DNA of 63,302 bases, counting the filler, from Klebsormidium nitens (lineage: Eukaryota; Plantae; Klebsormidiophyceae), in the NCBI GenBank assembly GCA_000708835.1. It is 7 parts of 7 records of this genome, joined end to end, with 100 filler letters (N's around TTAATTAATTAA, not from the genome) between each part and the next. Parts side by side here need not be neighbours in the genome. Positions count along the whole stretch, not along the records: positions 13,364 to 37,546 come from DF237859.1; 6 more parts are not named here. The stretch is one strand, 5' to 3'. A program made the translations under genes and the position numbers. The notes beneath the pieces were generated by a model, which worked only from the letters and a program-made list of their open reading frames with translations, was not told the DNA's origin and did no database searches. How positions within the stretch are numbered: position 1 is the first letter of the stretch; the number at the start of each line of letters is the position of its first letter. Shown piece after piece: positions 1 to 24,634 of the stretch.

Positions 1-1165
1 GCAGATCTCGCCGACGATGTTTGGCGGGCCAGGTATGTGGTCGATGACGAGGCGTATGGCAAACTCCTCCAGAAAGATGAGATCGGCACGCTGGATGAGG
101 TGGAGGTGCGGCAGAAACATGTCTTTGAGTGCATCCGCAATGTGCACAAGGTTGATCCGCGTCGAGTCGACCACAACTACGAGGTGGTGCACTGCGGCAA
201 GGAGCTCGTTCCGTACGAGAACTACATCAGGTGAGGGATGAATTAAAGCAAGCTGTGACCTGGTCGAATCGATTGGCCCCGGTCTGTTCTCCGATTTGTC
301 AGATCGAGTGCGAGATCATTCTCTGCTCGTTCCAAGCAAACAACGCTTCTAAGCATTGCCTCTTTGCATTTTGGGCTTTCAATCGTCCTTGCCATCTTTC
401 TCTGCGATTGCAAAGAGATGTCTGTTGCATTCTTCAGCTGTTGTAAGACGTGACGCCATATGACTGCTAGTTGCAAGAAGTCAGCTTGTCATTTGCCAAA
501 GACAAGGTGGACCAAGGCTCTAGTTCATACTGACGGTATCATGTGCGTGCGCACAGGGAGGAGCGGTTGGTCTGGATGCGACCCAGCAGCTTTTGGAATT
601 TAACACCCTCTGTGACTCTTTTATGGCTTTCCTTGACAGGTTTCAAACGACCCCTTTCTCTGACATCATGGACGAGCTCACGAGAGCCTTGAAGGAAGGT
701 GACATGGAGGGCGTCACAAAGGAGTATGCCGCTGCCAGGGGCGACATGTCGCGTCGGGTACCCTTTGCCGCGATGCTTCTGGCAGCTCTGTTGGGGTGCC
801 AGCCGGGGGAGGTGGAAAGGCGTAAAGAGGATGGGTTTGCGGTGGAGGAGGATACATTGCAAGCGATCCACGACACGGTGCTCGGGCCAACGCCTGAGCG
901 GCTCAGCTTCGTTCGCGACTTTTACGGGATAGACCAGACGGCTCGGGACTTGTCAGCAACAATGAAGCGCAATGCCATCAAGAAGATTCTCCACTTAGGC
1001 CTCGGGCTCAACCATATCGCACCAAAGAAGTCCAACGGGAAATTTGTTGCTGGCCGGCCCCACCTTTTCAAGCCGCTATTGTGGCAGGAAGTGCGAGAGA
1101 AGTACGGTCAGCTCGATGAGTACGAGGCGGCACTACCGATAGAGAGATGCATGATACGCACGTAG
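1..1165 (+). CDS. 3' part of a multi-exon hypothetical protein (exon 1-230, intron 231-556, exon ~557-1165); weak resemblance to the C-terminal region of large-DNA-virus origin-binding (UL9-like) helicases
   Basis: Frame 1 is open from base 1 (ADLADDVWRARYVVDDEAYGKLLQKDEIG...YENYI) to an AG|GTGAG donor at 231; CACAG acceptor at 552-556; 190-aa ORF 593-1165 ends in TAG. The splice phase does not join the two frames cleanly, so a frameshift or an alternative site is needed. The family resemblance is impressionistic only. Confidence 0.5.
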
Positions 1166-1530
1166 AAGTAGCTTCTGGTGCTGGTCGGTACGAGGAGGAC
1201 CCTAGTGCACGAGCTCTTGATAAACATAATCTATTGGTTGTTGAGGCAAAGGGTTGGCGCCTTTTTTCCCGAATCGTTTCAAGGAGTTGTCGATTGTAAT
1301 GATACGTGTTTTACTTACAAAGTGAGAAGTTGCACCGTTGCTTGTGTTATGAAGGGGATTTTGACTCCTACCGTTGCGCCATCAAATATCACTGAGGACA
1401 TTGTTCATTGTAAGATGGTCGTACTTGCATATAAGGCAAGTTTTGACTGCTAGATGCCATCATGAGCGCCGGACCATATATCTCAATGAAGATTCCGAAG
1501 TCAGGTTGGAATGGCTATCATAATTACATG

Positions 1531-1591
1531 CTAGTCAAAAGTTGCACCATTACTACTTGATTGCTTATACCGAGAGGCAACTTTTGACTAG
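1531..1591 (-). repeat. solo inverted copy of the array-1 palindrome with perfect 15-bp arms
   Basis: CTAGTCAAAAGTTGC (1531-1545) ... GCAACTTTTGACTAG (1577-1591); TGCTTA (reverse complement TAAGCA) at 1562-1567. Half copies (TTTTGACT) at ~1360 and 1441. Confidence 0.9.
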
Positions 1592-1629
1592 TTGTCACAG
1601 TCGCTTACAATCCTTTTTAAAGATCACAG

Positions 1630-2169
1630 ATGACAACCGTGATGACACCAACAGCCACGCCTTCTAGCTCGCGTGTCGCGCATGTACTTAGGGTGACAGT
1701 ATGGGAGCTGGATATATCAACGATGGAGCAGCTTCCGAATGGGTGCATGCTTTTTCGAGCCGTAGGGGTCAGCCTCGAAGGCCGTCAGGAACGCATTCGC
1801 AAGCTTCGATCCGGTCAGGAGCTCGTGCTGTGCAAGCATTCGGGGAACGGGTATGACGTGTACGCTATTGGGACCTTTGACTCGGCAGATCGCGGAAATC
1901 CTTTGGGGTTTGTTGCACGCGACATCAAGGATCATGAGGTGTTTGACACGGTCCGCCAAAGGTCGGAGATGCCGGCACGGGTGCACCGTGTCAATCGAGG
2001 CAGAGCAAGATGCCTCTGGCGCGATCGGACTCACCTCAGGTGCCGGCTCAGTCGGAGCGGAGCGAGGTGGGGTGGCAGGATGCGGGTCGCTGGAGGACGG
2101 GCTTGGACGGTCCTGCAAGACATCATGAAGGCGATGGGCTTTACGAAGAGCCATCATCTGAGAGGCTAG
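1630..2169 (+). CDS. stand-alone HIRAN-domain protein, possibly frameshifted near 2000
   Basis: FRAVGVSLEGRQERIRKLRSGQELVLCKHSGNGYDVYAIGTFD...LGFVARD fits the HIRAN pattern (vaGvsy..Rq..i..L..G..l.L.reP.N.yD.nAi.v....lGyvpr). The C-terminus reads more plausibly in another frame (EQDASGAIGLT). Confidence 0.7.
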   Translation: MTTVMTPTATPSSSRVAHVLRVTVWELDISTMEQLPNGCMLFRAVGVSLEGRQERIRKLRSGQELVLCKHSGNGYDVYAIGTFDSADRGNPLGFVARDIKDHEVFDTVRQRSEMPARVHRVNRGRARCLWRDRTHLRCRLSRSGARWGGRMRVAGGRAWTVLQDIMKAMGFTKSHHLRG

Positions 2170-2411
2170 AGAGAAGCGCTGCGTTCGTTCGCGCCACTCG
2201 GTGAGATCCAATCGCAATCTGAAGATTGAAGGAGCCGCCAAGATCAGCAAATCAATTTTCTAACAGCTCGGCCGGCTTGCATCAAGAACACCTTGCGGTT
2301 GCAGGCCCATCATCCAAAAGAGAGTCTGGCAGTAGTGCAGCTAGGCCATCTCGTTCTCACCAGCAGATCGTCCGCTGACTTCTCATCCGTCGTCGGGGCA
2401 GCCCCGTTTGC

Positions 2412-3157
2412 TCTCAAAACGCCCTCCACATCCACCTCATGCACGCAGGAGCAAACCTTTTCATTTGAGACCAGACCGACCCTCACAGCGGACGCTGCTA
2501 GAACCTTGGAAGTGATGACGCCGACCAGAAGTCAAAAGTTCCCTTCTATATAAGCACGTTCGTCAATTCAGGGCCCAGCTTTTGACTACGAAACGAGACC
2601 GACCAAGTCAGTCGCAAGCTAGGAGCTGATGGTGCATACCAGTAGTCAAAAGTTCCCTTCTATATAAGCACCTCCGTTGCATAAGGCCCAAGAATTTGAC
2701 TCCGGAACGAGACCGACCAACCTAATCACACGCTTGGAGTTGATCGCGGGACCAGCAGACAAAAGTCCCTTTCTGTATAAGCACGTTCACCAAAATAGGT
2801 TCCAGGTTTTGACTCCGACTCGAGACCGACCATCCTATCACACCCTTTGAGTTGATCGCGCGACCAGGAGTCAAAAAGTTCCCTTCTGTATAAGCACGTT
2901 CATCGGTTCAAGGCCCAGGTTTTGACTCCGAAAAGAGATCGACCATTCCAGTCGCAAGCTTGGAGTTGATCGCACCGACCAGGAGTCAAAAGTTCCCTTC
3001 TGTATAAGCATCTCCGTCGCATAAGGCTCCAGAATTTGACTTCAACAGACTGACCAGTCCACTCAACTCCTGAAACCCTACGGCAATATCACGCGGACCC
3101 GTTAGAATCTACCAGTTAGTATAAGCATATCAGCTTCCAATGGCGCAACTTTTGACT
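2412..3157 (+). repeat. tandem array 1: 5 well-conserved plus 2 degenerate units of ~112-117 bp, each with a 58-bp palindrome (AGTCAAAAG...CTTTTGACT) and internal TATAAGCA
   Basis: Palindromes at 2530-2587, 2644-2701, 2757-2814, 2869-2927 and 2984-3041; degenerate units at ~2412-2470 and ~3100-3157. The linkers (GAGACCGACCA...GGAGTTGATCGC) are also conserved. Confidence 0.95.
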
Positions 3158-3195
3158 CCTTGATTTGCAAGATAGCCATTTCACCCACTACCATG

Positions 3196-4900
3196 CTAGC
3201 AAAGGAGCCGAGACAAACCTAAAGAGTGTGCGACCAAGAAAATGGTGCTCACTTGACCGTCACTCATGAGTCGCCATGGACTCGGCACGATCACGAAGCC
3301 CCCATCGTCCTCAGGATCTGGCGGGTCGTCATCGCTTGGCACGAGCTCCTCGCGCCCCCTGTGCTGCACCTCCTCCTCTGAACCAGCAGCACCACACCGC
3401 CGTGCCAAAACACTGCCATTCCCACCCGAAGACTCTGATGATGAGAGCAGCACCCGACGGCGCCGCCTGATTTGTGGAGAGCGGGCTGCCCCATCAAGCA
3501 CCCGCCGCTTACGAAGACCCGGAAGCTCGTCCGACCCGGAATCCGTGTCCATTGCGGCTTCCTCAGAGCGCTGCGGCCGGATGCGGCCACCAGTAGCAGG
3601 CGGCAGCTGCTGATCAGCCCAACCCCCGACGCTCACCGTAGAGGAAGAGCCTTGTGAAGGGCTGCCTTCCTCGGCCGAAGCTTTCGACCAAGAGGACGGA
3701 GAACGGGCTCGGCAGCTTGTTTGGAGCGCCTTGGTCGCTCGTCCCGGCGCCTGCGGCTTGAAGCGCCGAGCCAGAAGCAGAGGGACATCCGAGTCGGAGC
3801 TCGATTCCCTGGCAGCACGAAACCTGCCTTGCGCAATCACCTCATTCTCTTCATCTTCGCTTGCGTCTTCATCGTCGATGAATGCGCGATCCCTGGATGT
3901 TTCCACGTCTTGAGGCTCGTCCACGCTCTCGAACTCCGCCCCCTCAATGTCCTCCCCTTCGTCTTCCGAATCCGACAGCTCCGACCCGGACTCATTGGCC
4001 GCACTCGTAGCCGACCGCTGGTTGCCGCCACTCATCTGGACAAACGATGAGAGGTTCCTGATCAGTTTCTAAGCAAACCTGATGCAAAGGTGACGACTAG
4101 CGCCGCTCGACTCGTGTTTCACAGACCGCAACCAGCCAGGCCGTGAGCTTTCACAAAGTGCTGGAATGTGACCCACTAAATACAGTCAAGTTGAGAAAGA
4201 AATCTGCTTGCTGCTTACAACATGCAGCTTGCCATCACTTTTGGTCCAATCTCAAGGGCTCGCGCTGGACAGCTATGCAAGGGACACTCAGCGACTTCAA
4301 TGATCTCTTTCCCAGGCTGAAAGCAGTGCCAGTCTGAAGACGTTTGGGGTCAGGATGCAAAGATCAGTAATACCTCGTCGCAACTGTCCGATGTGATGTA
4401 ACTTGATAACTCACCTGCTCACTCAAACGTGCTTGGCTCCTCCACGCTTCGAACTCTGAATGCATGCTCTGGGCTTGGCGCAGCGGCGGACTGCCGTAAA
4501 CCTCCTGCACAACACAGAAAGGCGATGATATTGAGCTCAGGTTCCCTCATTTGTGCCCTTTTTGTTCTGGGATGCTGCACGTCTCACCATCATGCAAACG
4601 ACATGCTTCTCATGATTGGGCATGATTGGACATGCTTCTTCAGCTCGCACGCAAGCGATCTCAGCAATCATGGAAGGATCCTCTTCGATGATGCTGCAAG
4701 GGGATTGTGTGCGCGCTCACCTCCAGCGACGGCAGTGGGATGAGTGGCCACCCTCTGTCGATGTCGCTTCCCAGCGTTGTCCTGTCTTGAGCCGCAGAAT
4801 CGCTTACCTCGTTGCCCCCCCAGCCGGGATTGGGCTCGATTCCCCCAATGATCAGGAGCGTTGCTGCTCGCAAAAAGACCACACCTCGGAATCTAGAGAC
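3196..4900 (-). CDS. multi-exon hypothetical protein with a 2A-like motif in an early exon and an acidic/Ser-Arg low-complexity terminal exon (4035-3196)
   Basis: 279-aa ORF 3196-4035 (acidic, FIDDED motif, basic NLS-like RKRR) preceded by a TCCAG acceptor. Upstream candidate exons: LLIIGGIEPNPGWGGNE|GTAAG (ends 4808) and EVYGSPPLRQAQSMHSEFEAWRSQARLSEQ|GTGAG (~4507-4418). The exon chain is not fully resolved. Confidence 0.5.
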
Positions 4901-14929: not shown

Positions 14930-15375
14930 ATGCGCCATGCCACTGCATACCTTTCGTGAATTTGCCATGAAAGTCAGACACGCCATTCTTCTGGAGAGAC
15001 TCATCAGTGTTCATGACAATGACATTGAGAGACCTTCGGAAGAGGGAGAGAAATCAGCAGACGAGAAATGTGCTCGGAACCCTAATCTGGAGCGTTACCA
15101 GTAAGTAATATGTTGCATTCAATCACAGATTGAAACGAGTTTCATGCAGCCTGTGGAACCACTTGCCATGACGTAATGCACCGGTCATGTCACCGGCCAT
15201 TAATTGGTCTGGGGGTTTTTATATTTGTATTTTTTATATTTGTATTCAAGAGAAACTCCAGCGCTTCAGGCACCACATGCACATGCCGCCACTCGGCTGA
15301 GACAAGCGTTTAAAATCTTCCCACACTCTGGCGGACTGCCAATTGTGGAGAAGATCGAGGGTACCTAAGGCTATA

Positions 15376-16805
15376 AAGCAGCAACAGCCAGGTTCAATTG
15401 CAAGACATTCCAATCATATGTTTTGCTAATGATCCTTCTCGTGTATGCCGTCCGAGATAAACCGTTCTGCACTCCCGTCCACCATCAATGATTATCCGTT
15501 GAATAAGCATGAGAACAGAATAGAGTGTTTGGCAAAGGAAGGTGGACAGGTTGAATGAAAGTTGACAGCCCTTTCATGCATGCCTACCTTTTCTTTCACT
15601 CTTTGGATGTATGGCATAAATGCAACATGAGATTGGTATGACATTTGGATGTGGGTTGCTATCAATTTGTATTGATTGATGCAATTAATCATTTAGAAGG
15701 TCTGGCCTACCGTCTAAGATGTTATTGCTGTCTTTATGTTTTGTCCGGATTGGATGAATGACATCCGGGACCACTACTGTAGAACTAATCTAATCTGCCT
15801 ATAGAACTATGGAAAGGGCTCCCAAGGGGCTATGTTCTAGGGGCTGGGCCAGACCAAACTCAAAGCATACCAAGAAAAGCCGGAATATTCTCTGAAAGCT
15901 ATCATGTAGCAATCCAAGCACTGTGATTTAAACACCTGGGTGAAAGATATGCAATTTTGGATGAGTTTTCCAGTTTTTCGGAGAGCTTCAGCGTTGATCA
16001 AAATGCCGTGCCTGGAGGGTGTTGTATCATACCTGGGGGGGAAGAGAAGCACTTGGTCAGTCTTTTGCCTGCACAGGGTCTTCAGGGACGAAGCCAATCA
16101 GTAGAATAGAGGTCTTCTGTAGATGCGGGCCTCTCACAGGCCAAGAGAATGCACTCAAGTCGTTTCAAGGCTTGGCCCAGCCCCTTTCGAATGCTAGTTG
16201 TCTCGTGCTTCGTCTTGCTGTTCGCTGAATGCCAAAGTGTCTTTGCTAGAAGGTCCGTGCTTTCTGTGGCGCGAGAAGGGCTTTCTGCTGTGCGAAGCAA
16301 TTTTGAAATGAGGAGCAAGCTCCGGGCATCGTCAGCTTTTGCCCTTGGGCGATGAGTTTGGAGTCGAACGTTGAAGTGTCTGACTTGGCAAACTCTGAGT
16401 GGCTGAAAGTCTACCGAAGCGTTCTGACCGTTCGATTCGATTTGTGAATTAAGTTGACCGAAGTGTAGGGTTTAACGTACGTACGCCGGGCGTGCTGACG
16501 TCATGCGGTGGTGAGGCGGCCGCGGCGTTGCCGGGCGCGTGCGCCGCGCTGTTCGCACCCGATGCGCCCGCGAGAGCGGCTGAGTTGCCGCCGGCGGAGG
16601 TGTCCTGGGGGGATTTCTTGTTGCGGCGCGTGGCTACACCGTCTGCCTTGGCAGTCTTGGCAATCAGAGCGGAAAGCCCTGGAGAGCGGCAAGAGTTTGA
16701 GTTTTACACCCAATGTATTAACCCCTGTTTTTGAGGTGTGTCCAGTTGCATTAGAAACCTCGCACGCTTGTGCAAGGCGGTGAAAAATAGAAGATACACT
16801 CCGAG
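15376..16805 (-). repeat. downstream direct repeat (pseudo-LTR-like), copy of 22036-23465
   Basis: Aligns to 22036-23465 at offset 6660; by eye about 18 differences in 1430 bp. Confidence 0.95.
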
Positions 16806-16823
16806 GGTCAAGTGTGCTTGGTT

Positions 16824-16880
16824 TCTAATGGCCCGCCACCACCCGTTCCGTGGTTGAGTGTCAACCCGGAACCCATCAGA
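16824..16880 (-). other. nested RNA hairpin in the 3' UTR of the element
   Basis: On the minus strand UCUGAUGG/CCAUUAGA (one G-U pair), GUUCCG/CGGAAC and GGUUGA-CAC-UCAACC form nested stems directly after the HNH stop codon. Confidence 0.65.
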
Positions 16881-16887
16881 TAACTAC

Positions 16888-17457
16888 TTACGTCCCGTAG
16901 CCTTTTGTGAGCGCTCCAAGGATTTCCGAGGTAATCAGGTTGTTACGCTCGCACGAGTGTAACAATCTGATGACGTCCTTAGTTGTTTTGAAGTGCGAAC
17001 CGGTGTGTTTGCCGGTCGACGGTTTGTTAGCCATGTTGTCAGACTTGCTGAGCCACCTGACGTTATCGATTGTATAATGTCGTAGTGGGTCTTTGCGATC
17101 CAATTGGAATTGAGAAGATGCCTCTAACGGCCAGAGTGGTAACGCTCCGAGGATCAGGTCTGTGACGTAAGCAAAGGCGAAGAAAGCATATTTATCTCTT
17201 TGGCTAGAGATTTTGCCTTTTGGTAGGTAAAACCCTTTCCAACCGAACGTGAGGCGGGTGGTGGCATAAGCGGGATCAAAATGAGTACGATTAATTAAAG
17301 AGTCCCATTTCTCGTAAACCGGGTGGTCAGTGTTTTTGACCACTTCTGACCTGCCGTTTTTGTATGTCCGGAGATTCAGGGGACATGAATTATAAACCGG
17401 AGACACGTATTTCAGCAGGCAGGCATCTAATTCTGTGAGTCCGTTTTGAACAAACAT
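16888..17457 (-). CDS. intact 189-aa phage-type HNH (DRxD..Y..xN.RW) endonuclease
   Basis: HPVYEKWDSLINR and QLDRKDPLRHYTIDNVRWLSKSDNMANK (17023-17103) match the hp.Y..W..M..R and sLDRIDn...Y.p.NcRWa...q..Nr motifs of phage HNH proteins; uninterrupted ATG to TAA. Confidence 0.75.
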   Translation of the reverse strand: MFVQNGLTELDACLLKYVSPVYNSCPLNLRTYKNGRSEVVKNTDHPVYEKWDSLINRTHFDPAYATTRLTFGWKGFYLPKGKISSQRDKYAFFAFAYVTDLILGALPLWPLEASSQFQLDRKDPLRHYTIDNVRWLSKSDNMANKPSTGKHTGSHFKTTKDVIRLLHSCERNNLITSEILGALTKGYGT

Positions 17458-17509
17458 TACAAATTGTGAAATGAGCGGAACCGTGGGGTTTTTAAAAGTC
17501 GGGTTGTAG

Positions 17510-19648
17510 CTAAACCGTGCGATGAGGTTGCATTAGTTGGGGGGGTAGGCTATCGTGCTGTGATAGCCCCCCGTCAGCAGCGAGGTTAAGATCTGGGTTA
17601 GCCACCGTTGTAACGGCACGTGTGGCTGATTGAGAGAGGAAGAGTTTTTTGAACCGTTTAGGTGCGTTTTTGAGAACTGATGCCCGGGGTGGGCATGCGC
17701 CGCCTGGTGGGAGACTGACAACATTGGACGCGTGTTCCACGTTTCCATTTAAAGCAAATGACGGGTCAATCGGAAAGGACATATAACAGGTGATAAAGAA
17801 GCTATGCTCGGAATTATTCTCTGTCATACCTAATGATTGCAGAGTGGGGACTTCTGCGGAAAAGCGAGTGGTGGGCCGATTTGTAAAAAGATTCAGAAAA
17901 GTGTGCCCTCCGTCTAGTTCCTTTGGACGGCGATACATTATTGACGTGATGACCAGAAGTCCTTCGAGAGCTTTCTCCGAAGGCTGAGAGGCATTGAGAT
18001 CAATGAGCTGCCTTGTCTTTGAAGTAACTCCGAACACGTGCGAGTAGAAAGAATCAAGGAGTGGAGAGTTACTTTCGTTCTCTTGACGGAGAGTGGTGTT
18101 CTCCGCCTGGATGGAGCCCATGGCCGTCTGGAGCGTCCGCATTTCGTCGTTCTTGGAGTCCTGGGCCTTTTGGAGGTTGGTGACGTCTGCTTGGAGCGCC
18201 TGGGTTAGGAGGGAAAGGCGGAGAAGTTCGTCTTCCTGTCCGCGTTTGGTGCTTTGTTGGGCCAGGGTTTGGAAGTTAACCGCTGGGTTATTGTCGAGGT
18301 TTGAGTTGGCCGGCGGGGGGATCCCTTCAGGTGGGTTAGGGCCCTGGGGTGCCGTTGGAGGAGTGTTTTCCGTAGCCGCCGGAACTGCCGGATTTCCGGT
18401 GTTGTTTTGCGGGTTCGGGGCTGGTTCCAGGGCGAGTTCGTTACGGGGTTTGGGGAGGGTTTCCTTTCCGGTTCCGGATTCTGCGACTTCGTTATCTCCG
18501 TACGTTCCGGGGGTAGTTTTAACCTGAGACTGCCATTCCTTGTGTCGTGCGAAGGCTTTGGATTGCCTAACCGCCTCACGTGCTTTTGCGTGACCGAGTA
18601 GGCACCGGCTGTCAAAGGAGCACTTTTCCTTTGGCGTGTGGAAGGCAGGGCATGGTCGTTCGTGCTTGGGGGCGTGGGAAAATTTGCACTTGGGTTCGGT
18701 GCAGGGTTTATCCTGAGCTGTGTTGACACATAGCTGCGTGAACTCCCCTTGGACGGTTGTGAAATAGGGCATCACCGACTGCCGTAGGACGGTCGCTTTG
18801 GCGGCGGGTTTCTCGTACGGTGTAGTAACCGGGGGGCGCGTTCCGCTGCTCCGTGGATTCTGCTGACGGGGGGCGTGCCGGATTGGACCGCCGGAGGGTG
18901 CTTCCGGTTTGGGTCTTGCCGTCTCGTTGACGGGCTGCCGGTCGCCGTTCCACTGTGGGCCTGTGTTTCTCTGTGGGGGTGCGAACTGCTGGGGATAAGC
19001 CTGTCGTGGTTGCAGGGGGGGGAAGTCGTTGTTTGCAGGGCCTCGGGCTGGGTAGAGCTCGACTCGTGCGTTTGGGGGGGGAGTCGTGTTCCGGTTCCAG
19101 TTTGGCGGTCCGTTGGTACCGCTGGGAGGTCCTGTAACGTTTCCGGTTTGCCAGTTGGGATTCGGGTTCCAGCGGGGAGGTTCCGTGTCCCACTGGCTGT
19201 TCGGCCGACCGTAACCGCCGTTTGGGGGATTCGGTTGCGGAGGGTTCTGGAAGGTTTGTGGGGGTGCGGAGTGTGTCTGACCGGGAGGTGGGTACTGGTG
19301 AGGCGGGGGTCCGTTTGGTTGATACGCCTGGGGAGCAGTCGGGGCGTACTGCTGCGGGGCCGGGGCGTTCTGCGGGGGAGGTGTTGACTGGGGGTACGGT
19401 TGAACCTGTGGCGCCGCATATGACGTCACGGCGTACGTGGCAGGCTGGGGGGGTGCTGGAGCCGGAGGTGGAGGAAGGAAGGCCGTTTGCGCCGCGGGTG
19501 TCGGAGCTGCCGTCGGTTGCGCGTAGAGGTAGGGCGGAGCCGTTGGAGGTGGGGCCGCCGGTGGTTGTGCAGGCAGCTGCGTCGGTTGTGGTGGAAGTGC
19601 TGTCGTCATCACGGCATACGCGGGGGCGCCGTATGGGTACGTATACAT
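17510..19648 (-). CDS. intact ~712-aa Pro/Gln-rich protein with two CCCH zinc fingers and a coiled coil
   Basis: C-x8-C-x4-C-x3-H (CVNTAQDKPCTEPKCKFSH) and C-x9-C-x5-C-x3-H (CPAFHTPKEKCSFDSRCLLGH) at ~18590-18730; heptad region LLTQALQADVTNLQKAQDSKNDEMRTLQTAMGSIQAENTTLRQENE; the ATG at 19648 lies 24 nt after the RT stop. Confidence 0.85.
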   Translation of the reverse strand: MYTYPYGAPAYAVMTTALPPQPTQLPAQPPAAPPPTAPPYLYAQPTAAPTPAAQTAFLPPPPAPAPPQPATYAVTSYAAPQVQPYPQSTPPPQNAPAPQQYAPTAPQAYQPNGPPPHQYPPPGQTHSAPPQTFQNPPQPNPPNGGYGRPNSQWDTEPPRWNPNPNWQTGNVTGPPSGTNGPPNWNRNTTPPPNARVELYPARGPANNDFPPLQPRQAYPQQFAPPQRNTGPQWNGDRQPVNETARPKPEAPSGGPIRHAPRQQNPRSSGTRPPVTTPYEKPAAKATVLRQSVMPYFTTVQGEFTQLCVNTAQDKPCTEPKCKFSHAPKHERPCPAFHTPKEKCSFDSRCLLGHAKAREAVRQSKAFARHKEWQSQVKTTPGTYGDNEVAESGTGKETLPKPRNELALEPAPNPQNNTGNPAVPAATENTPPTAPQGPNPPEGIPPPANSNLDNNPAVNFQTLAQQSTKRGQEDELLRLSLLTQALQADVTNLQKAQDSKNDEMRTLQTAMGSIQAENTTLRQENESNSPLLDSFYSHVFGVTSKTRQLIDLNASQPSEKALEGLLVITSIMYRRPKELDGGHTFLNLFTNRPTTRFSAEVPTLQSLGMTENNSEHSFFITCYMSFPIDPSFALNGNVEHASNVVSLPPGGACPPRASVLKNAPKRFKKLFLSQSATRAVTTVANPDLNLAADGGLSQHDSLPPQLMQPHRTV

Positions 19649-19671
19649 GCTGCCTGTAATCAAGTACAAGG

Positions 19672-22600
19672 TTAGCTGTCCCGGAGCTTTTGATCAAGTG
19701 TGAATTTAAAGATGAGTTCCAGGTCCTTTTTGTTTCCCATTAGTCGCGGGTTGTAGACTTGGGTGTTAAGGAACCTGGAAAAGGTAGTGCAGAGTTCCTG
19801 CCTGGGGTAGTTTTTGTGTTTGATTAGGTAGGCTGCCACGTCACCGACGTTGTCGAAGAAGCCTTCCGAATGAGTGTTTAGTCTGAACAGTCTGACGATT
19901 TCTCCGTAAAAAGAAGAGACCGACTGTGCAGTACTAGCATTCGAAGTAATATCTGGAAAGCGGTTGACAAAGAATTCGTAGTCATTCCTCTTGTCATGGA
20001 GGGTGACGTGGACTTCCCCTTGGAGATCGACAAAGATCAGGGTGTCCAGGAGTTTGCATTCGAGCAGGCGATTTGGATGAGGTTTGACTTTGTTAGGCAC
20101 CAGTTTGATGCCGGTGCTTTCAGGGTAAATGTCCTGGTACATTCGTTGAAAGTATTCTGCGTTTGTAATTCCGAAGTCATCCATAGCGAAAGATTAAATA
20201 CTGTAACGAGTGCCAGGGGTATTTTTCGACCCACTTACGCTCGTGTGCATGACATGTCAGGTTGGCAAGGAAACCGCTAGAGTGTCCTCCCTGTGGGATG
20301 CCATTTATCTGGTGGAAGATTGCGTTTCCAAGGGAAACGTATGAATTTCGCACCAGAAAGTCGAGGATGTTAAGGATGTTCTGAATTGGATACACCGTGC
20401 CTTCGCTACAGTGTTCCTTTTCACTGGGAAGAGTTTTGGTCGTGGGGTCCAGTCCTGATTCAGTACTGAACCAGGTGCTATCGTCTATTTTGTTTCCTAG
20501 GACTGTGGTACCTATGGCTATGAAGAAAGAATCGGCTCCAGCAATGGAAGCAGCCCTAGATTTCTCCGCGAAGTTGCTCTATAACATTGGATTGGTCCAT
20601 TGTTTGGTACATGGAGTCGATGTCCGATGATACCATGTGGACGAGGTGTTCAGGGAGGGAGAGGATGATGTCTAGACTGTTCTCTACAATCCAATACTTA
20701 CGAATTTTGGTGGTGCGAAACTCTTCTGCGTGAAAGTCTCTTAAGGTGCGCATAACCAGAGAGAGGGCTTGCGTGAGGATCCTTTGTGGAACTGCCAGGA
20801 CTGAGCGGTGAGTGGCCGCGACTGGTCTCCATCCTATTGGTGTTTTGTGTGGTTTAGGAAGGGTGTAAAAGTATGGAAGCTCGCTGGTTTCTTCCTGGAA
20901 TAATGTATTCAAGTGCGTGTGATGAACAAGACATGAGATTTGGTCGAGCAGCTTGGTAACAAGTTCATCCCGTGAGAGGGTGAGTCGTTGATACTCAGGA
21001 GCTTTGTGCAGGGTGATTACACATTGCTTAATATAAAGATTCTTGCAGACTACGAAGTGATTTCCTCTGCATTTGTCGGCTGGAAGAATGACATATTTGT
21101 CAAGAAAGGTCTCTAGTTCCGCCTGGTGGTCGGAAAGCTTGCCGGGAGCTGGAAATAAGAGTTTTTCGAGGTTGATTTCCCCGATTTCATTCTGACGTAA
21201 CATTTTCTGTACATGGTCATTAAAGCTTCGAAGGAGTTTGGAGGCCCAGCGATGGCTGTCTGGGTTTCGTTTTCTTTCAGTGAGTTCACGAAGGGCTGTT
21301 TCAAGTACTTGGGAAGCAAGTTTGGGATCCCCGTTGGTGGTTTTCCGGAACATGGGTCCCCTTTTAAGTCTATCTAGAATGATGGGATTAGAGATCAAGG
21401 CATCGAGGTTACCGCTTGCCAGATGGCCTTGGAAGCGTGTCTCTGCAGTGTGTTCCTTCTGACAATGACAAGCGATAGTGAAGTCTTCAAACCTGGGAAT
21501 AATTTCATTGATCCATGTGTCAAAGTCAACTCCGTCCAGAGTTGCTTTGTATTGAGATTGACTGAGCTTTTGTGGTGGCTCAGGATAGAGCCACCGGATC
21601 TGAAGGTTCTCATACGGATTTATATATTCAAGCTCGGCTTTCAGCTTTCTGAGGTCAATTAGGTTAAATTACTGATTGACGAAGGGAATCAACAGCCAGG
21701 GTGAATTAAGATCGGTTGGTTTCCGATCTGGATTGTAATAAAGCAGTTTATCTCTTTGAGTACAGTGAAACTTTTCCATGATATAACCATTAATCAGTCA
21801 GTAATTTTGAGGCCTGCACTGACCTGTGATTGCAGACTGAAGCCAGCAGAGAGGGATTGGAGGCCTCTTTCACAGAAAGGCTCTCTCGAAGACACCCAGT
21901 AGCTTGGTGTCTTCTTGGCGGTAGAAGGTCAGTTCAGGGTCCAGAGTAGAATTGAGAGGAAGTTGGGCCTGAGACTATCTGGGAATGAGCAGAAGCAACA
22001 GGCAGTTAGTTTCTGTCTGTTGAAAGAAGAATATGAAGCAGTAGCAGCCAGGTTCAATTGCAAGACATTCCAATCATATGTTTTGCTAATGATCCTTCTC
22101 GTGTATGCGGTCCGAGACAAACCGTTCTGCACTCCCGTCCACCATCAATGATTATCCGTTGAATAAGCATGAGAACAGAATAGAGTGTTTGGCAAAGGAA
22201 GGTGGACAGGCTGAATGAAAGTTGACAGCCCTTTCATGCATGCCTACCTTTCCTTTCACTCTTTGGATGTATGGCATAAATGCAACATGAGATTGGTATG
22301 ACACTTGGATGTGGGTTGCTATCAATTTGTATTGATTGATGCAATTAATCATTCAGAAGGTCCGGCCTACCGTCTAAGATGTTATTGCTGTCTTTATGTT
22401 TTGTCCGGATTGGATGAATGACATCCGGGACCACTACTATAGGACTAATCTAATCTGCCTATAGAACTATGGAAAGGGCTCCCAAGGGGCTATGTTCTAG
22501 GGGCTGGGCCAGACCAAACTCAAAGCATACCAAGAAAAGCCGGAATATTCTCTGAAAGCTATCATGCAGCAATCCAAGCACTGTGATTTAACACCTGGGT

Positions 22601-23000
22601 GAAAGATATGCAATTTTAGATGAGTTTTCCAGCTTTTCGGAGAGCTTCAGCGTTGATCAAAATTGCCGTGTCTGGAGGGTGTTGTATCATACCTGGGGGG
22701 GAAGAGAAGCACTTGGTCAGTCTTTTGCCTGCACAGGGTCTTCAGGGACGAAGCCAATCAGTAGAATAGAGGTCTTCTGTAGATGCGGGCCTCTCACAGG
22801 CCAAGAGAATGCACTCAAGTCGTTTCAAGGCTTGGCCCAGCCCCTTTCGAATGCTAGTTGTCTCGTGCTTCGTCTTGCTGTTCGCTGAATGCCAAAGTGT
22901 CTTTGCTAGAAGGTCCGTGCTTTCTGTGGCGCGAGAAGGGCTTTCTGCTGTGCGAAGCAATTTTGAAATGAGGAGCAAGCTCCGGGCATCGTCAGCTTTT
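19672..23000 (-). pseudogene. disrupted PLE ORF1: degenerate N-terminus, CxC linker and reverse transcriptase
   Basis: IACHCQKEH...QGHLASGNLDALISNPIILDRLKRGPMFR (21470-21350; Naiad/Chlamys linker); YFYTLPKPHKTPIGWRPV; SSDIDSMYQ; GIPQGGHSSGFLANL; RY/xDD split by a frameshift at ~20180; thumb FYGEIVRLFRLNT. There is a second frameshift at ~20575, a stop at 21669-21671, and many stops upstream. The upstream boundary is approximate. Confidence 0.85.
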
Positions 23001-23465
23001 GCCCTTGGGCGATGAGTTTGGAGTCGAACGTTGAAGTGTCTGACTTGGCAAACTCTGAGTGGCTGAAAGTCTACCGAAGCGTTCTGACCGTTCGATTCGA
23101 TTTGTGAATTAAGTTGACCGAAGTGTAGGGTTTAACGTACGTACGCCGGGCGTGCTGACGTCATGCGGTGGTGAGGCGGCCGCGGCGTTGCCGGGCGCGT
23201 GCGCCGCGCTGTTCGCACCCGATGCGCCCGCGAGAGCGGCTGAGTTGCCGCCGGCGGAGGTGTCCTGGGGGGATTTCTTGTTGCGGCGCGTGGCTACACC
23301 GTCTGCCTTGGCAGTCTTGGCAATCAGAGCGGAAAGCCCTGGAGAGCGGCAAGAGTTTGAGTTTTACACCCAATGTATTAACCCCTGTTTTTGAGGTGTG
23401 TCCAGTTGCATTAGAAACCTCGCACGCTTGTGCAAGGCGGTGAAAAATAGAAAATACACTCCGAG
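22036..23465 (-). repeat. upstream direct repeat, containing the 5' region and degenerate N-terminal coding sequence of ORF1
   Basis: Near-identical to 15376-16805; ends in a 13-bp-stem hairpin (23454-23484). Confidence 0.95.
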
Positions 23466-24634
23466 CGGAGAGCTCGGAGTGTATCTACACTTTTTCAGTA
23501 ACTCGGCTCTAAGCTTACTGCGGGGTCCCCGAGCAAAACAAATCGCCGCGCCGTCCAGCCAAAATTTGACTTCATGCAGACGTGCCAAGCACCAGCTGCA
23601 GACGGACCACGTGGAGTAACACTGTTGACGGCATGCCTGCTTCGGAATGGCGTACCGTAAATTTGAAACCCGTGAAATTGAAACCGCCGATCGAGATGTC
23701 CGGTCACATCGCAAGGTTCAAATCAGCTAAATCGAATCGCCGCGCTACTCAGACTCGCCGCGCACGCGCCTGGCACGCGCCTTACTATGCTACAAGCTAG
23801 GTCCTATCGTTCTATCATTACGACCAATTTTGGGCATAGACTTGTAAAGTATCATCGAAGGTGCAAACGCTCAAAACCTCCATATTTTGTATATTATATA
23901 TTTAAGGCTTTGCTTCCCTGCATCGTTTGAAAGAATCGACTTCCACCATGCACTGACCATTCGACTATGGTAAATCTTACTGCGGACCATGTTCGAATGC
24001 CTTACTATCCTTGACTCATAGTGCCATTTATGGGTAGTTTTGCTACCATGCAGACTATGTAATGGTTTGACGAGTGTCAACATTATATGGAAGTGGGACC
24101 AAAGCCCTCTAGCTCTCTTTTCTCTCAAATTCCAACTGGCAAGACTCGGAATTCGTCGGCCAGCCTGAGAGGTTCGTCTGAAACTATTCCTACGAGACTG
24201 CAATATCAAAGCATTCAAACGGTTTGTCAAGGGTTGTTACTGATGCGGACTTGGAAATGTAAAATTGGAGTTCCATGCACTTGGTAGACAAGTCACAGTG
24301 GCTAACTACCTGGGCCCCTTACGCCTGGCACTAATCAACCTAAGCGATTTTGCCATGATTCTCTGGTTTCCTTTCGTCTTTGATTGTCACGATGTATAAG
24401 CTGCCACTCGAGCACATACCCAGCCACACGGATCCAAACGTATAGGTCCTGTGCGGTTTGTCCAAAGCTTTTATGTCACAGTGTGGCTTCTAAGGCGTCA
24501 AATGCTCCAAAAGTGTCATTTTCTGCATGGCACAAATGATTAGGGGGACGCTCATGTCAACAATCCCAGAAATGCACGGAAATCCGCAGCGACCAGTCTG
24601 CGACTAAGTGTCGCAAACAAAATCAAGTGTGATG

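Follow-up and report, generated by a model that had tools for sequence, protein, structure and literature searches.

Can a Penelope-like element (PLE) carry its DNA-cutting domain on a protein separate from the reverse transcriptase (RT), and if so, how many proteins does such an element encode? This question is raised by a locus of the streptophyte alga Klebsormidium nitens (assembly GCA_000708835.1), located in a stretch of 63,302 nucleotides (nt) made of seven joined parts. That whole stretch is referred to here as the window, and positions count along it; the locus lies in the piece at 13364-37546 (record DF237859.1). Based on the sequence alone, the original prediction described a PLE with three open reading frames (ORFs), namely a Naiad/Chlamys-type RT, a CCCH/coiled-coil protein and a stand-alone HNH endonuclease, enclosed by 1.43-kb direct repeats. 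Comparison with related copies leads to a different account, which is probably correct: the region is a dead, full-length copy of a two-ORF PLE. ORF1 encodes an RT with a CxC motif and without a GIY-YIG nuclease, ORF2 encodes a CCCH/coiled-coil protein ending in an HNH-like domain, and a 5'-truncated tandem copy of the 3' untranslated region (UTR) lies upstream (22032-23504).

Decay of the copy and design of its relatives

The element unit spans 6,660 bp (15372-22031) on the minus strand, and all coding regions between the repeats are oriented accordingly. Read in this direction, a 252-nt leader is followed by an RT frame distributed over three reading frames, a 719-amino-acid (aa) ORF2, a 189-aa ORF3, and an 83-nt spacer. 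The leader corresponds to the 5' UTR (21780-22031), since it lies between the junction at 22031/22032 and the ORF1 start codon at 21779 and aligns with the sequence upstream of ORF1 in a related locus, L009. The tight spacing that had been reported between the ORFs was recovered: the ORF2 ATG (19648) is 23 nt beyond the ORF1 stop codon (19672-19674), and the ORF3 ATG (17457) is 52 nt beyond the ORF2 stop codon (17510-17512).

Several sequence variations relative to other copies abolish the ORF1 reading frame (19672-21779), which would encode about 702 aa if intact. An in-frame stop codon (21669-21671) is present where relatives have Trp, and 2 bp are missing at each of two sites, behind 20558 and behind 20182, relative to copies in sequencing runs X5 and X6 (X5 bears a different organism label from the window source). 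The deletion behind 20182 falls within the YMDD codons. Using tblastn, the intact 702-aa ORF1 of L009 (a Logan contig) aligns to 21779-19681 in three frames, with 77-82% identity. This copy is dead.

The boundary between ORF2 and ORF3 is a further variation, a 1-nt frameshift at about 17529-17577. In its present state ORF2 occupies 17510-19648, as defined by the ORFs themselves and by the homologues P0075 and P0076 (63-67% identity) and P0077. P0076, from locus L008, is a 914-aa ORF2 with the HNH-like domain in one frame, and its residues 685-913 align to 17577-16891, in the frame next to that of ORF2, with 79% identity. Similarly, the 702-aa ORF1 of L009 is followed after 30 nt by an ORF2 that reads straight into the HNH-like domain, and the 694-aa ORF1 of L010 is followed after 12 nt by a 736-aa ORF2 with CCCH fingers, a coiled coil and a C-terminal HNH-like domain. 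In L011 the corresponding ORF2 is 746 aa in a single frame, and six more ORF3 homologues have in-frame N-terminal extensions matching the ORF2 C-terminus. Because intact relatives carry the HNH-like domain as the C-terminus of ORF2, the three-ORF appearance of the locus is attributed to decay. To judge from these relatives, the native design comprises two ORFs separated by 12-30 nt, with an ORF1 of ~700 aa and an ORF2 of ~740-915 aa. The proposal of a multi-ORF PLE is thus upheld in that an extra ORF belongs to the element, but intact relatives have two ORFs and not three.

ORF1 and ORF2 share a frame in L009 (2385-2420) and L010 (2693-2710), and the 23-nt spacer of the window is out of frame. 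Readthrough of the ORF1 stop codon into ORF2 was considered as a general mechanism and rejected, because the L010 spacer contains a second in-frame stop and the window spacer is out of frame.

The association between the RT and ORF2 is not confined to this locus. Among loci fetched via ORF3, the RT, ORF2 and HNH-like regions are in the same order in L002 (62-70% protein identity) and L003 (38-51%). The RT is likewise followed by ORF2-HNH in L009 and L010, and in L011 an ORF2-HNH is followed by the ORF1 of the next unit. L010 is from unassigned contigs of a Globobulimina (foraminifer) metagenome (accession PJEL); its RT shows 32-40% identity, and window ORF3 matches its ORF2 at E = 1e-17. L011 is from JGI sample 3300062804. 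An RT with an adjacent ORF2-HNH therefore occurs in three deeply diverged lineages: the Klebsormidium family, the foraminifer-associated metagenome contig and the JGI metagenome contig. Chance juxtaposition, which the original prediction had already argued against, does not fit this pattern. ORF2 or ORF3 without an RT and with termini of their own were looked for among the relatives and were not found; the copies without an RT are 5'-truncated. L001, L004 and L007 are 5'-truncated copies in which the 3' part is kept, and because such copies keep the 3' part, ORF2 is assigned to the element. Overall, the observed linkage supports the conclusion that the CCCH/coiled-coil protein and the HNH-like module both belong to the element. 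The copies lie inside contigs of 20-100 kb with different flanks, and are thus dispersed and not terminal.

Reverse transcriptase, ORF2 protein and repeats

The predicted CxC and PLE RT motifs were found on the minus strand of the window: CHC (CxC, 21462-21470), GPMFR, PADKC, motif A SSDIDSMY, motif B NGIPQGG, and a split YMDD. In the intact ORF1 of L009, CHC is at residue 104, RGPMFR (GxKF/Y-like) at 140 and PADKC (the DK motif) at 233, and YMDD and a C-terminal thumb region of ~165 aa are also present. The distance from motif A to motif B is 109 aa in L009 ORF1, compared to 83-112 aa in relatives with GIY-YIG, an insertion at the IFD (insertion in fingers domain) position being judged by spacing only. 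When the window ORFs were compared to Pfam, RVT_1 and CCCH matches were below threshold only. With the intact relative P0057 as query, 1,842 of 1.84 billion proteins matched at E <= 0.001 (phmmer). In nearly all long RT matches, CxC is located about 405-425 aa before YxDD; an N-terminal GIY-YIG domain is present in 45 of the 77 long matches, and a C-terminal one in none. Outside the family, the best long matches have an N-terminal GIY-YIG followed by a C-terminal RT. Assignment of the RT to the CxC (Naiad/Chlamys-type) group of PLEs is well supported by these sequence comparisons. The type of RT originally proposed is thus borne out by CxC and by the relatives, but a single RT ORF is not present at this locus, given the stop codon and the two 2-bp deletions.

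GIY-YIG was found in the family's ORF1 neither with Pfam nor with a hidden Markov model of the relatives' GIY-YIG domains, which matches 45 relatives and no family member. In an unrooted LG+G4 tree, the rows without GIY-YIG (the Klebsormidium family, L010, P0086/P0092, P0115 and P0133) lie on one side of a branch with a Shimodaira-Hasegawa-like approximate likelihood ratio (SH-aLRT) of 99, and the GIY-YIG rows lie on the other. The contig that provides the context of P0133 (L013) is short and decayed. ORF1 residues 1-100 (21480-21779) form a region preceding CxC that is common to all of the relatives without GIY-YIG, with the pattern Q-R-D-x-x-L-Y-Y ... P-W-L-L-I-x-F-V-N-x-W ... I-R-W-x-Y-P, and no Pfam family matched these ~100 aa. 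A degenerate GIY-YIG remnant (on the pattern L-Y-Y ... L-I-P-F) was considered for this N-terminus and rejected, with an hhalign probability of 0.3%.

Look-alikes of the RT in the ESM-Atlas carry PF26215 (HTH_animal), PF28514 (DUF8422) and RVT_1, and are from Streptophyta, Chlorophyta, Rotifera and others; as a lead, they are consistent with the PLE assignment. A sequence search of the PDB with the RT gave chance ribosomal-protein rows only. According to precomputed annotations, PF28514 lies between the DK motif and the RT core in P0050, P0051, P0053, P0054 and P0057. PF28514 and PF26215 also co-occur in Atlas clusters, and PF28514 may be a useful marker for PLE RTs.

The ORF2 protein begins with a region, residues 1 to about 290, that is Pro/Gln-rich in the window and Gly/Arg-rich in L010 and L011, and is presumably disordered. 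It is followed by two CCCH fingers, C-x8-C-x4-C-x3-H (18674-18730) and C-x9-C-x5-C-x3-H (18590-18652), in which the Cys and His residues do not vary between the three lineages. The protein continues with a coiled coil (18068-18235), a middle region that is conserved and, finally, the HNH-like domain. P0077 (KFL_009100010, partial [Klebsormidium nitens]) is the gene model of the window ORF2, with 98% identity.

The direct repeats at both ends are as had been described (15372-16805 and 22032-23465; 1,434 bp each, 98.7% identity over 1,435 columns, with a spacing of 6,660 bp), and an ORF scan of the window found no ORF of the element within them. The downstream repeat is part of a 3' UTR of ~1.5 kb (15372-16887). 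The 3' terminus reads ...TGCTTTATA at 15372, and is neither poly(A) nor a microsatellite. Position 15372 is taken as the true 3' end because three X5 short-read contigs diverge there into three different flanks. The upstream repeat continues into an additional 39 nt (23466-23504), which in run X5 is found between 16805 and 16806 of a related full copy. Since it runs on into element-internal sequence, the upstream repeat is a partial tandem copy of the 3' UTR and not a true long terminal repeat (LTR), and the 39 nt are element sequence that the full copy of the window has lost. The repeats are therefore ordinary PLE pseudo-LTRs derived from a partial tandem, and the special shared enclosure that was first suggested does not hold. 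A head-to-tail tandem is also present in L011, in which ORF2-HNH is followed after 960 nt by the ORF1 of the next unit. Additionally, L009 starts 25 nt inside the end of the repeat, and collinear patches of similarity between copies (window/L008, L002/L004 and others) occur in the 1-1.5 kb 3' of the HNH ORF.

Short-read contigs of run X1 cross the flank/repeat junction and the junction at 22031/22032, one of them covering 19520 to 22031 plus 43 nt of repeat. X1 is probably the source run of the assembly, and these contigs are therefore not independent support for the junctions. Part of the 39-nt segment repeats the first ~13 nt of the repeat in inverted orientation, and the segment pairs with 23454-23465 in a perfect hairpin of ~12 bp; the truncation point of the partial copy is also the boundary of the 39-nt deletion in the full copy of the window. 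The hairpin may be a pause or template-jump site for the RT. The segment was also considered as a PLE 'tail', but this was rejected because it is internal in the related X5 copy, and it is thus an indel or hairpin. A structured 3' end, as initially proposed, was not recovered: the last 229 nt of the element fold no better than shuffled sequences (z = -0.88), and no hammerhead or other Rfam family matched either strand of the piece 13364-37546 at E <= 1.

Other accounts of the locus must be weighed against a decayed two-ORF PLE. If the three-ORF design is native at least in a subfamily, then ORF3 would be expressed on its own from the ATG at 17457 or via ribosomal frameshifting. Consistent with this, ORF3 has an ATG of its own and an uninterrupted frame of 189 aa, and an X5 contig over 17276-17698, with no gap at 17529, has the same ORF2/ORF3 frame state as the window; X5 is also intact at both RT deletion sites. 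However, the X5 contigs are short and need not derive from one copy, and an X6 contig is one base short at 17529. At least ten independent relatives in the three deep lineages have ORF2 and HNH in one stop-free frame, and the conserved domain begins about 25-40 residues before the ATG, which means that ORF3 on its own would lack the N-terminal part of the domain. It is unlikely that any subfamily has a truly separate ORF3, and a native three-ORF design overall is improbable. A different point that counts against the favoured account concerns the tree, which includes neither an outgroup (no TERT) nor reference PLEs (Repbase Chlamys, PLE-X or Athena). Because the tree has no outgroup, the rows without GIY-YIG may or may not form a clade, and GIY-YIG may have been lost or may never have been present.

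Two further accounts are very hard to reconcile with the comparative data. If ORF2/HNH were a chance neighbour or nested insertion, or the 6.66-kb repeat a segmental duplication or assembly artefact, a single locus with repeats devoid of element ORFs, as is visible in the window, could still be seen. In contrast, L002, L003, L009, L010 and L011, with protein identities of 21-87%, all have RT and ORF2-HNH side by side in the same orientation, the 3' side is always retained in truncated copies, and the 3' UTR is collinear among copies; with respect to an artefact, short-read contigs contain the junctions and another organism label also holds related copies. This account is thus highly improbable. 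An LTR-type or DIRS-type element with true 1.43-kb LTRs, to which no greater weight is given, would be compatible with two near-identical direct repeats flanking the coding part and with an X5 depth that is greater in the repeat than in the body, an excess that solo LTRs would likewise produce. It is contradicted by the 39-nt continuation of the upstream repeat, which lies inside the element in a related copy, by RT relatives that are GIY-YIG PLEs, and by the head-to-tail tandem of L011 and the common 5'-truncated copies. Furthermore, Pfam searches of the window ORFs found no integrase, RNase H, protease or tyrosine recombinase.

The HNH-like domain

The HNH-like domain is encoded at 16888-17577, of which 16888-17457 corresponds to the ORF3 of the original prediction, as delimited by the P0076 alignment, the PHROG and phage gene matches, and the pattern of substitutions. 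Its core motif, from QLDRKD to ANKP, is at 17020-17106. Between 18 and 20 of the 22 family members match PHROG families annotated as HNH endonuclease (phrog_374, 2081 and 3377) or restriction endonuclease (phrog_8790), with a best E = 6e-10. Matches by tblastn and blastp are to Kayvirus genes annotated 'HNH endonuclease' beside the endolysin gene (for instance NC_025416.1 35607-36227), with 30% identity over 103 residues. The element and the Kayvirus proteins have in common the core H-P-x-Y-x-x-W ... Q-L-D-R-K-D ... Y ... N-x-R-W ... S-x-N ... N-[KR]-P-S. That phage family is present in 854 phage records, with HNH, AP2 or homing endonuclease annotations, and in one record is found under a group I intron. 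Neighbours of the domain in the Atlas are likewise phage proteins and, more weakly, NUMOD, I-HmuI-like and endonuclease VII clusters. At the level of sequence, the domain can thus be regarded as a supported homologue of HNH-type homing endonucleases. Across copies of the element, the proportion of nonsynonymous differences (pN) in the HNH region is 0.10-0.27, compared to a saturated synonymous proportion (pS) of 0.70-0.92. Because pN is far below pS, the domain was under purifying selection during diversification of the family. In comparison to the stand-alone HNH nuclease of the original prediction, an HNH-like module is indeed present, but it is a frameshifted ORF2 C-terminus and does not stand alone, and its action as a nuclease is a matter of interpretation, given an Arg in place of His.

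In canonical HNH domains, the general-base His ends the first beta strand (the H of 'DH'). In window ORF3 numbering, used for all residues below, the corresponding position of the element is R121, which follows D120 within the motif D-R-x-D. This Arg is shared by at least 90% of the aligned members as well as by L010, L011 and the phage relative. This substitution weighs against a nuclease, as do several results on family membership and fold. Pfam and NCBIfam do not match the HNH-like domain, and NCBIfam is silent on the phage homologue too. A first AlphaFold2 (AF2) model of ORF3 had a predicted local distance difference test (pLDDT) score of 60 overall and <50 over the motif; a second reached 72.8, with a beta hairpin at the motif and no confident helix after it. 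Foldseek found no match to the AF2 model in the PDB at E <= 0.001, and VIA-align placed the HNH enzyme PacI at rank 3 (Z = 4.5), among unrelated rows. In sequence searches of the PDB, ORF3 had no match and the ORF3 profile gave spurious HDGF rows only, and a metagenome contig scan with the ORF3 alignment found no relative.

If the domain is catalytically dead, it may act as a DNA-binding or target-recognition module, with integration at pre-existing 3'-OH ends (breaks, telomeres or replication intermediates), as proposed for PLEs that lack an endonuclease (EN-minus). The Arg at the catalytic position, the silence of the Pfam HNH models and the weak fold evidence are all compatible with this alternative, and EN-minus PLEs do exist and must secure 3'-OH groups by other means (PMC8557442). 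Conversely, the counterparts of the metal-ligand residues are conserved: D120, directly before the Arg, is nearly invariant, N132 is invariant, and S-D-N (N141) is kept by most members as well as by L010, L011 and the phage. By analogy, these Asp and Asn residues may represent the HNH metal ligands and structural Asn. H127, six residues after the Arg, is an invariant His in the retroelement lineages only, with Asn in the phage proteins. Purifying selection on the domain is strong, and the copies are dispersed and not terminal, with three flanks in X5 and internal positions on the contigs of 20-100 kb. A dead domain is therefore a serious but rather unlikely alternative, and catalytic activity of the HNH-like domain is modestly favoured.

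Proposed mechanism and comparison with known systems

For a two-ORF PLE with an HNH-like domain, the following mechanism can be envisaged. A single bicistronic transcript would be produced, possibly with the upstream pseudo-LTR as promoter. Because the ORF1-ORF2 spacer is only 12-30 nt, translational coupling is proposed, in which ORF2 would be translated by termination-reinitiation or a similar process. The ORF2 protein could multimerise via its coiled coil and bind element RNA via its CCCH fingers, in a role like that of the ORF1 protein (ORF1p) of long interspersed nuclear elements (LINEs). The HNH-like domain would then nick chromosomal DNA, and the ORF1 RT would copy the RNA by target-primed reverse transcription (TPRT), a reaction for which in vitro work with a PLE is available (PMC11167929). 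Frequent 5' truncation and partial tandems would be the outcome, as in other PLEs (PMC8557442). One result that counts against this scheme is that none of the RNA runs among those listed contains the stretch. A broader interpretation is that this is an ancient and widespread PLE lineage of superfamily level, with members in streptophyte algae as well as unidentified eukaryotes, marine and other, that nicks for TPRT with a phage homing-type HNH domain on a LINE-ORF1p-like second protein; the case for it is finely balanced. More generally, the data suggest that the PLE class has changed its DNA-cutting module at least once.

Naiad/Chlamys PLEs are most likely the closest relatives by descent, as judged from sequence. 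These elements form partial tandems and pseudo-LTRs, are 5'-truncated, and have no canonical hammerhead (Craig et al. 2021, PMC8557442). The element described here resembles them in its CxC, GxKF/Y-like and DK motifs, its long A-B insertion, its pseudo-LTRs and 5' truncation, the absence of a canonical hammerhead, and its streptophyte-alga host. It differs in having no GIY-YIG, in a second ORF with CCCH fingers, a coiled coil and an HNH-like domain, in the N-terminal ~100 aa of ORF1 without a known family, and in the 3' UTR of ~1.5 kb. The two ORFs of the intact L009 and L010 also depart from the general single-ORF design of PLEs. PLE-X elements are EN-minus relatives of Chlamys in Chara, Selaginella and mosses, and how they integrate 'remains to be seen' (PMC8557442). 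Similarly to the present element, they have CxC, lack GIY-YIG and reside in streptophytes. By their description, on which alone the comparison is based, PLE-X possess canonical hammerheads, carry an N-terminal extension with CxCX1-8C that is set apart by an intron, and target rDNA in Selaginella, and a downstream nuclease ORF is not reported for them. The absence of a hammerhead in the element thus agrees with Naiad/Chlamys and not with PLE-X.

More distant systems share individual features. Athena elements and Terminons of bdelloid rotifers combine a PLE RT with extra ORFs, some of which have coiled coils, and are giant, telomere-associated and EN-minus. The present element is similar in having a PLE RT with an additional ORF and a coiled coil, and rotifer clusters are among its Atlas look-alikes. 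In contrast to Terminons, it is 6.7 kb in length, is dispersed inside contigs, and keeps to a fixed design of two ORFs that includes an HNH-like domain. Group II intron proteins have an RT and a C-terminal HNH 'En' domain in one protein, and the HNH domain nicks the target to prime reverse transcription; both activities require the ribozyme RNA of the intron. They are most likely the closest functional analogue for the combination of RT and HNH. Here, however, the RT is of PLE type, and the HNH-like domain is on a separate protein and belongs to a phage 'D-R-x-D' subfamily; group II intron RNA had no Rfam match in the piece at E <= 1. LINE-1-type elements are comparable in being bicistronic with a short spacer, in having a coiled coil and a nucleic-acid-binding module on one protein, and in their 5'-truncated insertions. 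Unlike them, the element has the RT alone in ORF1 and the nuclease-like domain together with a putative RNA-binding protein in ORF2, and it has neither an apurinic (APE) nor a restriction-like (RLE) endonuclease nor a poly(A) tail.

With regard to the nuclease itself, phage HNH/AP2 endonucleases are free-standing, measure about 200 aa and frequently have AP2 or NUMOD-like tails that bind DNA, whereas the element version is fused to a ~700-aa protein. A precedent for recruitment of a His-Me/HNH homing-type endonuclease by a eukaryotic transposon is provided by KolobokP, which is reported to carry a His-Me finger homing endonuclease (PMC9587614), although KolobokP is a DDD/E DNA transposon and not a retroelement. 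In the literature searched, all endonuclease-positive PLEs have GIY-YIG, fused N- or C-terminally (PMC8557442). Their endonucleases were suggested to come from homing endonucleases, possibly several times (PMC8557442), and the present lineage fits such repeated origins, with a different nuclease family. Full-text literature searches, which covered sources other than Repbase and subscription journals, found no description of a PLE with an HNH/His-Me nuclease or with a downstream nuclease ORF. A PLE lineage that lacks GIY-YIG and has an HNH-like domain on a second protein therefore appears to be undescribed.

If this account is correct, then the lineage represents a third nuclease solution for PLEs and a new eukaryotic retrotransposon architecture. 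It would also support repeated capture of homing endonucleases by retroelements, in parallel to group II introns, and would offer a tractable protein pair for studies of PLE mechanism and for retroelement-based tools. If, in addition, the HNH interpretation holds at superfamily level, this would be the first class of nuclear retrotransposons in eukaryotes for which use of an HNH nuclease is known, and direct evidence that homing endonucleases gave rise to PLE endonucleases on more than one occasion. It could also explain the integration of 'EN-minus' Chlamys-like PLEs, for example PLE-X.

Other copies and derivatives of the element were observed in the course of these comparisons. In run X7, which has the same organism label as the window but is from another sample, 345 short contigs correspond to window positions 15000-20999 and are mostly 90-95% alike, showing that many diverged copies are present in that strain. 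The differences are mostly C>T (69, versus 12 G>A), and this excess may result from a bisulfite-type library or from strand-biased deamination of repeats. In L001 (a contig of JGI 3300060284), a Helitron_like_N and PIF1 helicase pair (1105-3892) is on the opposite strand, ~4 kb upstream of the 5'-truncated element copy. The element has also left traces in annotation, as three K. nitens gene models (P0077, P0080 and P0081) are built on its ORF2, one of them only in part. KFL_001740010 is a paralogous N-terminal part of ORF2, with the UniRef name 'C3H1-type domain-containing protein'. Additionally, a K. nitens 'acetamidase/formamidase' model has 81% identity to the ORF2 query over 26% of its length, suggesting that a transposable element fragment was merged into a host gene model.

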